Source: Macrostomum lignano (lineage: Eukaryota). Taken from it: 64,000 nucleotides of DNA. The stretch covers positions 121,938 through 185,937 of the forward strand of contig NIVC01000555.1 of the NCBI GenBank assembly GCA_002269645.1, in the 5' to 3' direction. Below, piece after piece: positions 43,703 through 59,802 of the stretch. The notes below the pieces were generated by a model that saw only the letters and a program-made list of their open reading frames with translations, had not been told where the DNA came from and made no database searches. How positions within the stretch are numbered: position 1 is the first letter of the stretch; each line of letters begins with the position of its first letter. A program made the position numbers and the translations under genes.

Positions 43703-44530
43703 ATGGCTCAAGGAGAAAATTATTCCTCGTACAACGGTATCCTTGAGTGGCTAAATCCAGCCACCAAAAATGCAAGGTTGATAGCTTCAGATTCAAGCAA
43801 ATTCGCTTGTGAACTGCGTAGTACGGAAAGAAGCGCAAAAAAGGAGCTGCTCTCTCTCTCAGATTGCAGCCCTTACAGCGTGGACTTTAGTGGAAAGAGG
43901 TTTCTCGACTCGATGGACGGTGCGAAATCTTCTGGAGATAAGCTGAAAAGTAAATGCGATGCGCTCTGTAAAGAATGGAAAAAATTTGCCAATGATTACG
44001 CTAAATCAAGCAAAGGGAAAAAAGAATCCACCGAATTGGACAAGCTGTTGAAAGATATGAATAAACTTTTGAAAAAATGTGCCGCTTGCAGACAGCAATA
44101 TTCTGTGACTCAAGAGAAATTAAAAACCGCCATCAATGACTGCTCCCTCTTTGTTAAAGAGCTAGAAAAGGAAGCGGACCGCAAGAGAAAAGAGAAATCT
44201 GCCAGAAAACTAAAAGGCTACGGTGCAGCAGTCGTTGGCTTGGGTGCAGCTGTGCTTGGTAGGCTCTCTGACAAGTTTAGCAAAGATCGCGGAAGCATGA
44301 AAACGATGCGTCGGTGCCTGATGCAACTGTCTGACTTGATTGCTAGCCTTGAGAGATCGACTAAAGACATGACGAGAAGCATCGAAAACGGAAGAAGGGA
44401 GAGAGTTAAAGATACGACACGTAGTAAGGAGCAGGAAAATAAGAAACTGAAAGATACGATACGTAGTCAGGAGCAGGAAAATGAGAAACTGAAAGAGCAA
44501 CTCCGAAAAGCTGGAATTTCAGATGACTGA
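43703..44530 (+). CDS. All-helical coiled-coil protein, family member 1 (275 aa; hydrophobic hairpin deleted, 14-aa C-terminal duplication)
   Basis: Intact ORF after ttgcag acceptor; paralogous to 50580, 58974 and (C-terminus) 48679. Confidence 0.8.
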   Translation: MAQGENYSSYNGILEWLNPATKNARLIASDSSKFACELRSTERSAKKELLSLSDCSPYSVDFSGKRFLDSMDGAKSSGDKLKSKCDALCKEWKKFANDYAKSSKGKKESTELDKLLKDMNKLLKKCAACRQQYSVTQEKLKTAINDCSLFVKELEKEADRKRKEKSARKLKGYGAAVVGLGAAVLGRLSDKFSKDRGSMKTMRRCLMQLSDLIASLERSTKDMTRSIENGRRERVKDTTRSKEQENKKLKDTIRSQEQENEKLKEQLRKAGISDD

Positions 44531-46574
44531 TCAAATTTTCACACCAAAAACTGACTAAAGCCTGCGAATTGGCTCTGCACACTATTGACTAATCGATTGC
44601 GAATACAGTTAACATTTTCTACTACCCTTTATGCATGGCAAAAGTGATCTTTTTAGCTACGAGTGTTTGAATAATTTTTGTAATTGGTATTGTATTTGTT
44701 CTAATTGCGCGATAGTTGGCTGTATCAACTGCATATACTCGTACCTGTACTACTGCCTACAATGTTTGCAATATTCAAGCTATCAGTAAGTGAAGTAGCT
44801 GGCCAGCTGCGGATAATGCAACATAATTTTAATTTCAGTATCGATTAGTTTTCTTCTGGTGACTTTTGAACTGCAATTTACTCCCTATCAATATCCCTAT
44901 ATTTACTCCCTTAGAATATTGTGCTAGCAATTTAGCTTCACTTACTTTGGGGGACTGTACTATATCGCCTTGGGGAACAGTCTCGTCTCAGCTGGAAAAC
45001 TACGTGTACTATACCTATACCATTAATTATCCAATGCGATCCAGAAGTTGGTGTCGTAGAAGCAGTGTTTTATTGCAGTCTTTGTCCGTTTATCGTGTAC
45101 TCTTTAGTTTCGTTATTTTTGGCAAATGCATTGCCGCTTCATTTTATTGTCTATGTCCCAACCTGGCGTATCTTGTAAGCCTAGAACCTACGGCGTCGTT
45201 CTATAGAATTCTGGTTGTTTTTAGTTGCACAATACAAGCGGCTGCCTGATCAAGGCTAAAGCGTTTTCTTATTCTTTCAAAAGTGCAGTCTGCAGTTCAT
45301 GACACTATTTTTCTATATTTCCTTGATAGACAGGCATATTTACTCATTAGTCAGGTTAAACAGGTAGAAATTTTAGGCCGGCTCATTTCCTCAAGAATTT
45401 GCTGATCAAGTGTTACTCACGCTAGACAATGTAAATTACATCCTTGAGCAGTGATGATCTCCTAATTAGCAGGTATGAGGGGTATTTTCGGAAATTGTTT
45501 CCACTTCCTCTATAATGCCACTAATTTTGAATTTAGTATTCCAAAAAAATGGGAGTCGACTTTGTTAAAAAAACCGTTCCTCCATAATCCCATTAATTCT
45601 ATCTGTACTATCCCCAAAGAATCGTATTGTTCAAACTTCATTCAATTGTCTGCCCAAAGCCAGATCCCAACAGCTTTCAACCACCAGTACAGTGTGGAGA
45701 GCTCAAACAAGGCTGTCGCCAGGATAGGCCCAGCGGAGACGGAGAGGATGAGTTTTGGGAGAGAGTACGCAGAGAGAAGCTTGCCCGGAAGGAGAAACAG
45801 ACAGAATTGAACAGCGAAGGCTATTCCTGAAGTAAGGCAATTGTACTCTCCACCTTTCTACCTGCTGAGCCAGCAGAGGCTGTATCGATTTTTCTGACTA
45901 AGCATCCCCTCAGCAGCGGTCGCAGTCCCCAACGTTTGCGTCCATTTTTAAGCGATGCGGAATTTCTCTTTTGCGCTTGCGAGCCATTGAGCTAGCATCT
46001 CACAAAGGCGCTTCTGTTGATTGGGTTAACAAGTTGAAGCCGAACCAGATACTGCCAGAATCAGATACTGCAGTCTCCAATATTGCATTGAAGCTGTCAT
46101 GACAAGTATTGTGCCTTTCTGTCTACTTATAGTAAAGCAACATCAAAATGCTCCTATTTTATGATTACAATGCTGCAAGTATCCGATAATACAGTATTCG
46201 TTTTTATGCAGAGAAGCTCTCACGACAACTACTATACGTTTTTGTCTACTTATAGTAAGGCGATGTTAAAATGCTCCTATTTTATGCCAGATTCTTTGCC
46301 AACTTTAATATCACATTCTCTCAAAACTCAAACTGCAGAGATTGTAGGTCTCGGGCTTGTAGGTCCTTAAATTTTCGTTGGAGTTCGATTTTGTACGATC
46401 GCTATCGATCTGCACTGAATATCCTTGTCGCTGTTGCAGTCTCTGCGCAAGGAAATCTATTTATACTGTATGTGTGCACAGTAAGTCTCTTCCAAGTCTT
46501 GCTCATTTCCATACTAATGGCCAGTAAGTGCTACTGCAATCAGCCTTTTATCAGGCTAGTTCACACTCACGCTG

Positions 46575-46755
46575 CAGACAGACAGACAGACAGACAGACA
46601 GACAGACAGACAGACAGACAGACAGACAGACAGACAGACAGACAGACAGACAGACAGACAGACAGACAGACAGACAGACAGACAGACAGGCAGACAGACA
46701 GACAGACAGACAGACAGACAGACAGACAGACAGACAGACAGACAGACAGACAGAC
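46575..46755. repeat. (GACA)n microsatellite
   Basis: Same site as 62701-63229 in copy B. Confidence 0.97.
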
Positions 46756-46936
46756 GACACCATACAAATATGCAAACGACTTTTATGTAGTCTCTGAGTG
46801 TACTTCAGTGTATTGTTGTGTAGAGTAGTGTACTATGGTTGAGCAGTAATGTTTAGTACAATGTTCTGTATAAGCAATAATTGGAAACAAAAGTACGCGG
46901 TGATTGTTCAATATTCAATAGACCAGATTGACTCAG

Positions 46937-47206
46937 TCAGGGCTTGAAAAGGTTGGCAATATCCAGGCCACACTCGAGACATGCCAAGCAGATGTGGATG
47001 CAGCAGCAGACATTTTCCAGAGTCTCCATCTTGCTCGTCTCTGCTTTTGTGTCCTCCACTGAAGTTGCAATAATTTTCTCCCGATCTGACGAGCCTGCAG
47101 GCTGATCCAGCGTTGCGTCATTGGGTGCTTCGAGGACTGCTTTGTTCTTGTCTATGGAGTTCTTCATTTCAGTAGCTTTGCAGCGTCTCTTGGCAGCGAA
47201 TGCCAT
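46937..47206 (-). CDS. CYSTM-like small protein, 89 aa
   Basis: MAFAAKRRC...ENVCCCIHICLACLECGLDIANLFKP-stop; paralog at 63407. Confidence 0.7.
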   Translation of the reverse strand: MAFAAKRRCKATEMKNSIDKNKAVLEAPNDATLDQPAGSSDREKIIATSVEDTKAETSKMETLENVCCCIHICLACLECGLDIANLFKP

Positions 47207-58307: not shown

Positions 58308-58647
58308 CACAGTTGAGCAGAGCAGACGAGCTGTAAGAACCGCTGTTAAGAGGTAGATTAAATCATGCAATTTCATTTTTTTGAAAGTAGAAAAGATCAT
58401 CTGGCGATTAGAAAATTTCTTGTTTTATATTTTACTAGAAGGTTTATCTTTCCTCTATGCATGGTTGCACCGATGTTTTAAAAACATTAGCAACAGAAAC
58501 GCATACCGGTAAGTAAATTAAATTCAGAGACGATATATATCGAAATAAATATACCAAAATCCCCTTTAAAATCGCAAACATCACTGTATACTCAATAGAA
58601 CTGTACTGTACTTTACTGCATCTCGGAAGACACATGAGAAAAATCCG

Positions 58648-58679
58648 GGGAAAACCAGTGAAATTTCCGCGGTATTTCC
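58648..58679 (+). promoter_or_regulatory. Rel/kB-like site cluster upstream of helical gene copy B
   Basis: GGGAAAACC 58648, GAAATTTCC 58660, GGTATTTCC 58671; candidate 5'UTR intron 58845-58964. Confidence 0.4.
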
Positions 58680-58973
58680 ATGGCATTACCTTAGTTCCAT
58701 ATTCGCGCGTCAATCTAAATGTATAAAAATCGACGATTGATACTGTACGTATAATAGTGATTTCGGTTGCAGAGACTCTAGCATCATTCACAGCTTTATT
58801 TACATACCTTGCTTCAGGTGCTTAAGTCTTCGAAATATACCTCAGTGAGTGTTTATATCGAAATGATCTGACTGCTTTGTTTCAGTACTCGCATTTGTTT
58901 TTCCTATGAAATTGTTTTATCATGCACTTAGAAACGTTTTCCTAATGTAAATTTACTATTGCAGTTTTGAGGA

Positions 58974-59802
58974 ATGGCCCAAGGAAAGAATGATTGTTCG
59001 TACAACGGTATCCACGAGTGGCTAAATCCAGCCACCAAAAATGCAAGGTTGATAGCTTTAGATTCAAGCAAATTCGCTTGTGAACTGCGTAGTACGGAAA
59101 GAAGCGCAAAAAAGGAGCTGCTCTCTCTCTCATACTGCAGCCCTTACAGCGTGGACTTTAGTAGACAGAGGTTTCTCAACTCGATGGACGGTGCGAAATC
59201 TTCTGGAGATGAGCTGAAAAGTAAATGCGATGCGCTCTGTAAAGAATGGAAAAAAATTTGCCAATGATTACGCTAAATCAAGCAAAGGGAAAAAAGAATC
59301 CGCCGAATTGGACAAGCTGTTGGAAGATGTGGATAAACTTTCGGAAAAATGTGCCGCTTGCAGACAGCAATATTCTGTGACTCAAGAGAAATTAAACACC
59401 GCCATCAATGACTGCTCCCTCTTTGTTAAAGAGCTAGCGAGGGAAGCGGACCGCAAGAGAAAAGAGAAATCTGCCAGAAAACGTAAAGGCAACTTTGCAG
59501 CACTCGTTAGCTTTGGTGCAGCTGTGCTTGGTAGGCTCTCTGACAAGTTTAGCAAAGCTCGCGGAAGCATGAAAACGATGCGTCGGTGCCTGAAGCAACT
59601 GTCTGACTTGATTGCTAGCCTTGAGAGATCGACTAAAGACATGACGAGAAGCATCGAAAACGGAAGAAGGGAGAGAGTTAAAGATACGACACGTAGTAAG
59701 GAGCAGGAAAATAAGAAACTGAAAGATACGATACGTAGTAAGGAGCAGGAAAATGAGAAACTGAAAGAGCAACTCCGAAATGCTGGAATTTCAGATGACT
59801 GA
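58974..59802 (+). CDS. All-helical coiled-coil protein, near-identical to 43703 (275 aa after removing one A)
   Basis: A7 at 59250-59256 versus A6 in copy A splits it into ORFs 58974..59267 and 59230..59802. Confidence 0.7.

Follow-up and report, generated by a model that had tools for sequence, protein, structure and literature searches.

A candidate ClyA-like, hairpin-bearing protein family in a tandem gene array of Macrostomum lignano

The genes described here are best explained as members of an animal protein family with a ClyA-like layout, in which a hydrophobic hairpin would insert into a membrane; we give this reading, together with that of the window as a birth-and-death array, a probability of roughly 55%. 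The window is the whole 64,000-nucleotide stretch of DNA that was analysed (contig NIVC01000555.1, positions 121,938 to 185,937, forward strand). Because its DNA is from Macrostomum lignano, the array is eukaryotic, and a genome search of this host returned 28 six-frame matches in G000. The family has not yet been named, and we describe it as a metazoan, ClyA-like, candidate membrane-inserting family whose place within the ClyA superfamily has yet to be proven.

The gene array and its copies

The array consists of direct repeats. The following features were identified in the window:
43666..63671, + strand: tandem segmental duplication (direct-repeat families D3-D12; TRF)
43688..43693, + strand: ttgcag, resembling a 3' splice acceptor (conserved sequence, 9 nt ahead of the ATG)
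43703..44530, + strand: intact short-form gene, 275 aa (ORF and alignment)
48679..49482, + strand: 267-aa ORF, family membership not established (ORF)
50580..51480, + strand: long-form copy, broken (ORF and alignment)
58974..59802, + strand: short-form copy, broken (ORF and alignment)

Units start at about 43666, 50543, and 58937, with spacings of 6.9 and 8.4 kb, and every gene-bearing unit contains a (CAGA)n microsatellite detected by TRF. The ttgcag motif recurs with its last base at 50570 and at 58964, and a ccag has its last base at 48677; the site is a putative 5'-UTR intron or trans-splice acceptor. We read the window as a birth-and-death tandem array in which 43703 is an intact gene lacking the hairpin head, 50580 a broken long copy, and 58974 a broken head-less copy. 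Intact long copies occur elsewhere on the contig; within the window, 50580 is the sole one of the long form.

Copy 50580 carries two lesions, and its pieces were each analysed on their own, with no read-through. The +1 frameshift that an earlier note had placed at 51086 is present: the run 51086-51090 has five A where the other copies have four. An in-frame TAA TAG at 51418-51423, overlooked in that note, lies 19 codons ahead of the ancestral stop at 51478-51480. The frameshift may be a sequencing error; the TAA-TAG is no homopolymer error. Copy 58974 has a +1 frameshift of its own, likewise overlooked, in an A-run at 59250-59256 (seven A compared with six). The same frameshift breaks the paralogue C555:205041, so it is an inherited mutation, and sequencing error was ruled out as its source.

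The Gly/Ala-rich segment first noticed in copy 50580 was recovered as an uncharged 41-residue run (GYGAAVVGFGAAVATAGVATAPAMFAAGSLTTASVGTAAWT). In P0002, an intact paralogue of 50580, an uncharged 41-residue run covers residues 173-213, lying between the helices at 110-178 and 217-292; the 19-residue Kyte-Doolittle maximum of the protein is 1.68. Alignment confirmed that 43703 and 58974 lack exactly 102 bp of the segment in frame, corresponding to 51136-51237 of copy 50580; the junction in 43703 falls at codons 184/185 (44254|44255). The deletion takes out residues 186-219 of the long form, which comprise most of the hairpin and the linker into helix 4. A 42-bp C-terminal duplication had been reported to accompany the deletion. 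The repeat itself is present, with 2.1 units at 44408-44496 and at 59680-59768. It is not bound to the deletion, because the long copy C230:559347 has three units; C555:205041 has four.

The ORF at 48679 had been taken for a family copy with a polar segment at the hairpin site, a reading that did not hold. It lacks a hydrophobic segment (Kyte-Doolittle maximum 0.31) and resembles the family tail only over its C-terminal 44 residues (45% identity, E 1e-8). Outside these residues, hhalign found no match to the subfamily or wide-family profiles, and a DNA comparison showed no similarity. Paralogy beyond the last 44 residues was therefore ruled out by the hhalign and DNA comparisons.

Family extent, predicted fold, and the link to ClyA-type pore formers

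A profile search identified 91 family proteins at E<=1e-3, most of them covering the whole profile. Members come from Macrostomum lignano, from a sponge (Amphimedon queenslandica), and from further eukaryotic contigs, are about 300 aa long, and begin with helix 1, without a signal peptide. Of 89 members, 88 carry a hairpin segment, which is 30-68 residues long (median length 50 residues, median G/A/S/T content 66%, no charged residue in 73), so that the long form is the norm, a point missed when the array was first read. Pfam assigned no curated family to the window copies and the 89 relatives, only coiled-coil noise, and neither HBL nor HlyE was found among these relatives. A phmmer search of P0002 against the PDB gave zero matches. 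Word-indexed homologue searches retrieved nothing with a distant paralogue as query and only the starting proteins with the family alignment.

Two sponge proteins connect the family to caspases. In P0025 the family domain comes after a Peptidase_C14 domain (E 3.4e-37), a fusion that could be a gene-model artefact, and P0022 has a caspase gene 3.9 kb upstream, on its own strand.

The long form is confidently predicted to be an elongated four-helix bundle in which the hairpin joins helices 3 and 4. The AlphaFold model of P0002 (pLDDT 87.5, pTM 0.80) has helices at 10-50, 57-104, 110-178, and 217-292, with the hairpin at 179-209 modelled at low confidence. The model of the 43703 short form (pLDDT 92.2, pTM 0.82) has helices at 8-50, 58-102, 108-171, and 178-269; a tight 6-residue turn takes the place of the hairpin, and the bundle is intact. 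Across the two models, the four bundle helices are 41-92 residues long. The proposed AlphaFold and Foldseek check, carried out with P0002 and the short form, gave an elongated bundle with ClyA as the best natural match. The top natural matches are all ClyA (4pho_B, TM 0.59/0.61; 1qoy, 0.60/0.55; 4phq_B, 0.58/0.57), and AhlC is matched at a TMt of 0.55-0.56. Foldseek E-values are 0.03-0.3, with 0.04-0.3 for the ClyA matches, and not significant; designed bundles reach similar scores, and long helical bundles readily match one another.

The family profile A4, searched against PDB sequences, placed Hbl L1 (7nmq) first (E 5.6e-10, bias correction 1.5 bits), and also matched SmhB (E 0.0024) and Hbl B (E 0.0038). 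Among the 89 members, NCBIfam matched the XaxA family in 16 (best 4.5e-8), NheB in six, HblD in five, and MakE and MakA in two each. These matches are collinear, score 17-30 bits, far below curated cut-offs of 125-360, and are interspersed with SMC/Rad50 coiled-coil noise. Isolated collinear matches include XaxA on P0002 (residues 72-192) and MakE on P0022 (residues 12-125, N-domain only). The hairpin-free profiles A5 (N-domain) and A7 (C-helix) recovered no pore former from the PDB sequences, only generic helical and coiled-coil proteins, which weakens the claim of homology; the PDB link may therefore reflect a convergent Gly/Ala-rich two-helix hairpin. The likeness to ClyA, Hbl, and Nhe proposed in the earlier note accordingly stands for the layout, the ClyA fold match, and Hbl L1 as the top PDB sequence, and falls short for homology, which is unproven because the PDB sequence link is lost in hairpin-free profiles and no curated cut-off was reached.

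The head-less form and the proposed mechanism

The short form is separated from a long gene by a dS of 0.02-0.06 and one deletion, and its closest relative is the long copy C230:559347. Values of dN/dS are 0.8-1.5 in the short-form clade compared with 0.42 for a deep long-long pair, and two of four short-form copies are frameshifted. C555:68974 is a mosaic, with a 5' part like C230:559347 and a 3' part, including the deletion, of the 58974 type. From this mosaic, repeated, independent 102-bp deletions were rejected in favor of one origin plus gene conversion. Judged from these alignments, the short form is a deletion allele that is young, has a single origin, and was spread by gene conversion; it has no detectable constraint and is best read as a loss-of-insertion variant that bears no sign of upkeep by selection.

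In the mechanism that we favor, the soluble or peripheral state would be the helical bundle, from which the hairpin would swing out and insert into a membrane. The small-residue faces of the hairpins would then allow them to pack together, and the resulting oligomer would perturb or perforate the membrane. An intracellular membrane, or one of the cell's own, is the probable target, given the lack of a signal peptide and the caspase linkage seen in the sponge. The head-less allele arose by a single 102-bp in-frame deletion followed by gene conversion into another locus, and its product, if expressed, could still co-assemble with long forms.

The earlier note had pictured one membrane-inserting member accompanied by hairpin-less partners. 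That picture is not upheld, as the long copy of the window is broken and the short form is a recent derivative. A version in which selection keeps the head-less copies as partner subunits or as dominant-negative regulators, resembling the A/B/C components of tripartite alpha-pore formers, is improbable. It would fit the alternation on contig C555 of short copies (165640, 180911, 205041) with long ones (172517, 195939, 213449), the intact bundle predicted for the short form, and the transfer of the deletion allele to a second locus. It is opposed by the youth of the short form and its dN/dS, by the inherited frameshift in half of the short copies, by the broken state of the neighboring long copy, and by the absence of head-less proteins from the rest of the family. 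In tripartite alpha-pore-forming toxins, the components are co-encoded, anciently diverged paralogues with distinct heads, all of them required. Here, by contrast, copies are broken, short and long forms differ by a dS of 0.02-0.06 and one deletion, and paralogy of 48679 could not be detected; the short form derives from a long gene by recent deletion rather than being an ancient component.

Two other readings were weighed. The hairpin could serve as a permanent anchor, monotopic or two-helix, and so keep a cytosolic coiled-coil bundle attached to an organelle such as the ER, the mitochondrial outer membrane, or lipid droplets; the protein would then be non-lytic and form no pore, and the ClyA likeness would be a generic long-bundle analogy. 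This is a possible but less likely account. The missing signal peptide, the long C-terminal coiled coil with its variable 14-residue repeats, the generic helical proteins returned by the hairpin-free profiles, and the non-significant Foldseek E-values all agree with it. The composition of the hairpin does not, being 66% G/A/S/T rather than the Leu/Ile/Phe of typical anchors and having a conserved turn motif. ClyA is also consistently the best natural fold match, the top PDB sequence is a pore-former head, dN/dS is high, and the birth-and-death dynamics of the array suit housekeeping scaffolds less well than genes of conflict or death. That the family belongs to apolipoprotein L, with whose layout the earlier note compared it, is very improbable. 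The two have a common layout of helical region, hydrophobic hairpin, and C-terminal coiled coil. ApoL hairpins have an APxxxGxSL-like motif, and the Macrostomum lignano subfamily has an A-P..F..G-S-L string where its hairpin turns. However, the string is confined to that subfamily and is not kept across the wider family, where the consensus is F-T-x-G-x-G. The ApoL Pfam family (PF05461) had no match at E<=1 in six window proteins, including the hairpin-bearing piece, and is not among the families matched by at least two of the 89 relatives at E<=0.01. With no profile match in these searches, the ApoL idea was dropped. A literature search found no paper dealing with the identifiers of these Macrostomum lignano genes, with ApoL in Macrostomum, or with a link between ApoL and ClyA.

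Significance and comparison with known systems

Animal membrane perforators include MACPF/perforin, gasdermin, MLKL, ApoL, aerolysin-like, and actinoporin proteins. If the favored reading is true, a ClyA-like family that is invisible to Pfam and common to a sponge and a flatworm would be an additional class of animal membrane-inserting protein. Sponge members adjoin or are fused to a caspase, which offers a testable link to cell death in early animals. A bolder extension, which we consider doubtful, is that the family is an ancient, hitherto unrecognised animal branch of ClyA-type pore formers acting as intracellular executioners in death or immunity, coupled to a caspase in the sponge and expanded into fast-evolving arrays in Macrostomum, with head-deleted copies as decoys of the pore or brakes on it. 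The Macrostomum array supplies natural controls, namely one bundle in hairpin-bearing and hairpin-lacking versions, and the animal is amenable to RNAi, in situ hybridisation, and transgenesis.

Apolipoprotein L resembles the family as a group of animal helical, membrane-acting proteins with hydrophobic hairpins and C-terminal coiled coils, and differs from it in the missing sequence-profile match and in that the turn motif is not kept throughout the family. SLATT two-helix effector domains and plant DUF677 (UPF0496) give weak matches centered on the Gly/Ala hairpin and the next helix, all below cut-offs and with no support for a likeness outside the hairpin; their size and context are unlike those of the family. 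The closest comparison is with those alpha-pore-forming toxins of the ClyA superfamily that have a hydrophobic head (ClyA; Hbl L1, Hbl B, NheB; SmhB, AhlB/C; XaxA/B; MakA/B/E). Proteins of both groups are about 300-350 aa long and are elongated bundles of long helices; in both, the third long helix is joined to the fourth through a hydrophobic hairpin whose relative position is the same, and the hairpin plus next helix of the family align to Hbl L1 and SmhB and also resemble NheB. Unlike these toxins, family members are encoded in a flatworm and a sponge by nuclear genes of a single exon, have no signal peptide, carry at the C-terminus an additional coiled coil whose 14-residue repeats vary, and in the sponge have a link to a caspase.

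Animal ClyA-type proteins have so far been reported solely as predicted Hemolysin E-family genes of a few drosophilids, among them those of Drosophila ananassae giant hemocytes (PMC9275024). Like the candidate family described here, the Drosophila ananassae genes are multigene, of ClyA type, and thought to be defensive. The present family differs in having no curated Pfam match and in occurring in a sponge and a flatworm, and would therefore be much older or much more diverged than the Drosophila Hemolysin E genes.

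Gene copies in the window and their surroundings

The 275-aa product of 43703–44530 matched only Macrostomum lignano proteins in a collection of 5.8 billion proteins. A DNA alignment of three close copies confirmed that 102 bp of the copy at 50580 (51136–51237) are missing, exactly and in frame, from those at 43703 and 58974, and that the 50580 copy has one A too many in the run 51086–51090. The short (hairpin-deleted) copies carry 2.1 copies of a 42-bp unit, as described earlier, and the hairpin of the long form is a 41-residue run without charge. Maximum Kyte-Doolittle values (19-residue window) are 1.68 for the long form, 1.23 for the short form, and 0.31 for 48679. 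The earlier note counted 48679 as a copy of the family; its likeness is limited to the last 44 residues, and neither profile-profile comparison nor blastn found anything further. Two lesions had been overlooked. Copy 50580 has an in-frame TAA TAG at 51418–51423, which is no homopolymer error, and 58974 has a frameshift at 59250–59256. The identical break occurs in the copy at C555:205041 (the window's contig), and the 58974 frameshift is therefore inherited.

The coding regions are all intronless. The setting is eukaryotic, with a LINE-type reverse-transcriptase fragment, (CAGA)n microsatellites, satellites, and a putative acceptor (ttgcag) conserved 9 nt ahead of every ATG. The 21-bp satellite accounts for the block of low GC content at 10847–16314 and for its long ORFs, which occur on both strands, and the MAM and RhoGAP ORFs are probably exons of ordinary host genes.

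Other features of the window
1140–2483, minus strand: MAM-domain ORF (E 9e-69)
9500–9965 and 16942–17591: 22-bp and 12-bp arrays flanking the 21-bp satellite
10847–16314: satellite with a 21-bp unit, 260 copies, 5.5 kb
21616–23049, plus strand: RhoGAP-domain ORF (E 3.5e-18)
41211–42980, plus strand: LINE-type reverse-transcriptase fragment, immediately upstream of the first array unit
46575–46759, 54877–55382, and 62701–63233: (CAGA)n microsatellite, one per duplication unit, of very unequal lengths
56702–57140: 67-bp tandem array (6.6 copies), in a single duplication unit only

Two loci on the same contig (L013, C555:191262; L014, C555:188973; locus coordinates 1501–2693) have an N-terminal fragment (111 codons) of a 50580-like gene followed, after ~50 nt, by a 267-aa ORF resembling 48679. 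This arrangement, present in two copies and absent from the window, is a rearranged or chimeric unit.

Origin of the short form

A DNA tree places the four short copies (43703, 58974, C555:205041, and C555:68974) in a single clade with the long copy C230:559347. The hairpin of this long copy has diverged from those of other long genes, indicating that it is ancestral to the clade and that the deletion is derived. Site-by-site comparison identified C555:68974 (minus strand) as a mosaic. Its 5' third, to about alignment column 368, tracks C230:559347, and from about column 378, deletion included, it tracks the 58974 type. The 102-bp deletion therefore arose once and was then copied by gene conversion, which the mosaic sequence indicates between array members ~100 kb apart. 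Values of dN/dS are 0.8–1.5 inside this clade, which includes the long copy, based on few substitutions, and 0.42 between deeply diverged long genes. Two of the four short copies carry a frameshift. No evidence was found for the proposal that the short form is a selected hairpin-less partner, a role it may still have.

Family distribution and caspase linkage

A six-frame search of the assembly holding the window (764 Mb, 5,269 contigs) yielded at least 28 matches, including distant members of 338–356 aa and five intact long forms.

Intact long forms from the six-frame genome search
C555:56767: P0004
C555:195939
C555:213449: P0002
C230:559347
C230:565651: P0003

A profile of ten members, with the C-terminal coiled coil trimmed off, was searched in 1.84 billion representatives and retrieved 91 proteins at E ≤ 1e-3, most ~300 aa long and aligned over the entire profile. 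Matches carrying names belong to M. lignano or to the sponge Amphimedon queenslandica; the remainder lie on multi-Mb ENA contigs or short Logan contigs. The hairpin is found in 88 of 89 relatives (median length, 50 residues; median G/A/S/T, 66%) and is mostly without charge. No Pfam family describes these 89 proteins. In two distant subfamily members (L027 and L028, on contigs C859 and C2998), an intron directly follows the hairpin (AAKR|gtgaga, about position 1926). A related Logan protein on a 1-kb contig, P0005, reads across this point and so looks like a spliced transcript of a related species.

The annotation of the Amphimedon paralogue P0025 shows one 596-aa protein, in which a complete caspase domain (E 3.4e-37) precedes the family domain. 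At another Amphimedon locus (GL345233.1), a caspase-domain gene (5003–6094) lies 3.9 kb upstream of a family member (10001–10957) on the same strand; the pair sits within a glycine-dehydrogenase gene of the opposite strand. The caspase linkage could instead be a gene-model fusion. Together with the absence of a signal peptide in the family protein, the linkage tentatively suggests a function in cell death or immunity, exerted on own-cell membranes.

Predicted fold and relation to pore-forming toxins

The intact paralogue P0002 was modeled in place of the broken 50580, which was not read through. The AlphaFold2 model (89-sequence alignment; pLDDT 87.5, pTM 0.80) has helices at 10–50, 57–104, 110–178, and 217–292 and a low-confidence hairpin (179–209). 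A Foldseek search of the PDB returned no E-value of significance; among natural proteins, the top TM-scores were all ClyA (0.51–0.61), with AhlC next. The short-form model (pLDDT 92.2) keeps this bundle and has a six-residue turn where the hairpin would be; its closest match is once more ClyA.

A profile of the 89 members searched against all PDB sequences placed Hemolysin BL component L1 at the top (E 5.6e-10), the match spanning the hairpin and the helix after it, with SmhB and Hbl B at E ~3e-3. Among the 89 members, recurrent NCBIfam matches, collinear but sub-threshold, were to the XaxA family (16 members), NheB (6), HblD (5), MakE (2), and MakA (2). As a control, hairpin-less sub-profiles (N-domain and C-terminal helix) were run separately and returned zero pore-formers, only designed bundles, chemoreceptors, tropomyosin, and similar proteins; the sequence link therefore depends on the hairpin region. 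Weak matches to SLATT and DUF677 are likewise of hairpin type. The suggested ApoL likeness found no support in Pfam scans of the window proteins or the 89 relatives. Of the comparison with ClyA, Hbl, and Nhe, homology is not demonstrated, but the architecture stands: in the predicted models, the family protein is constructed like a ClyA-type toxin, and it plausibly acts like one.
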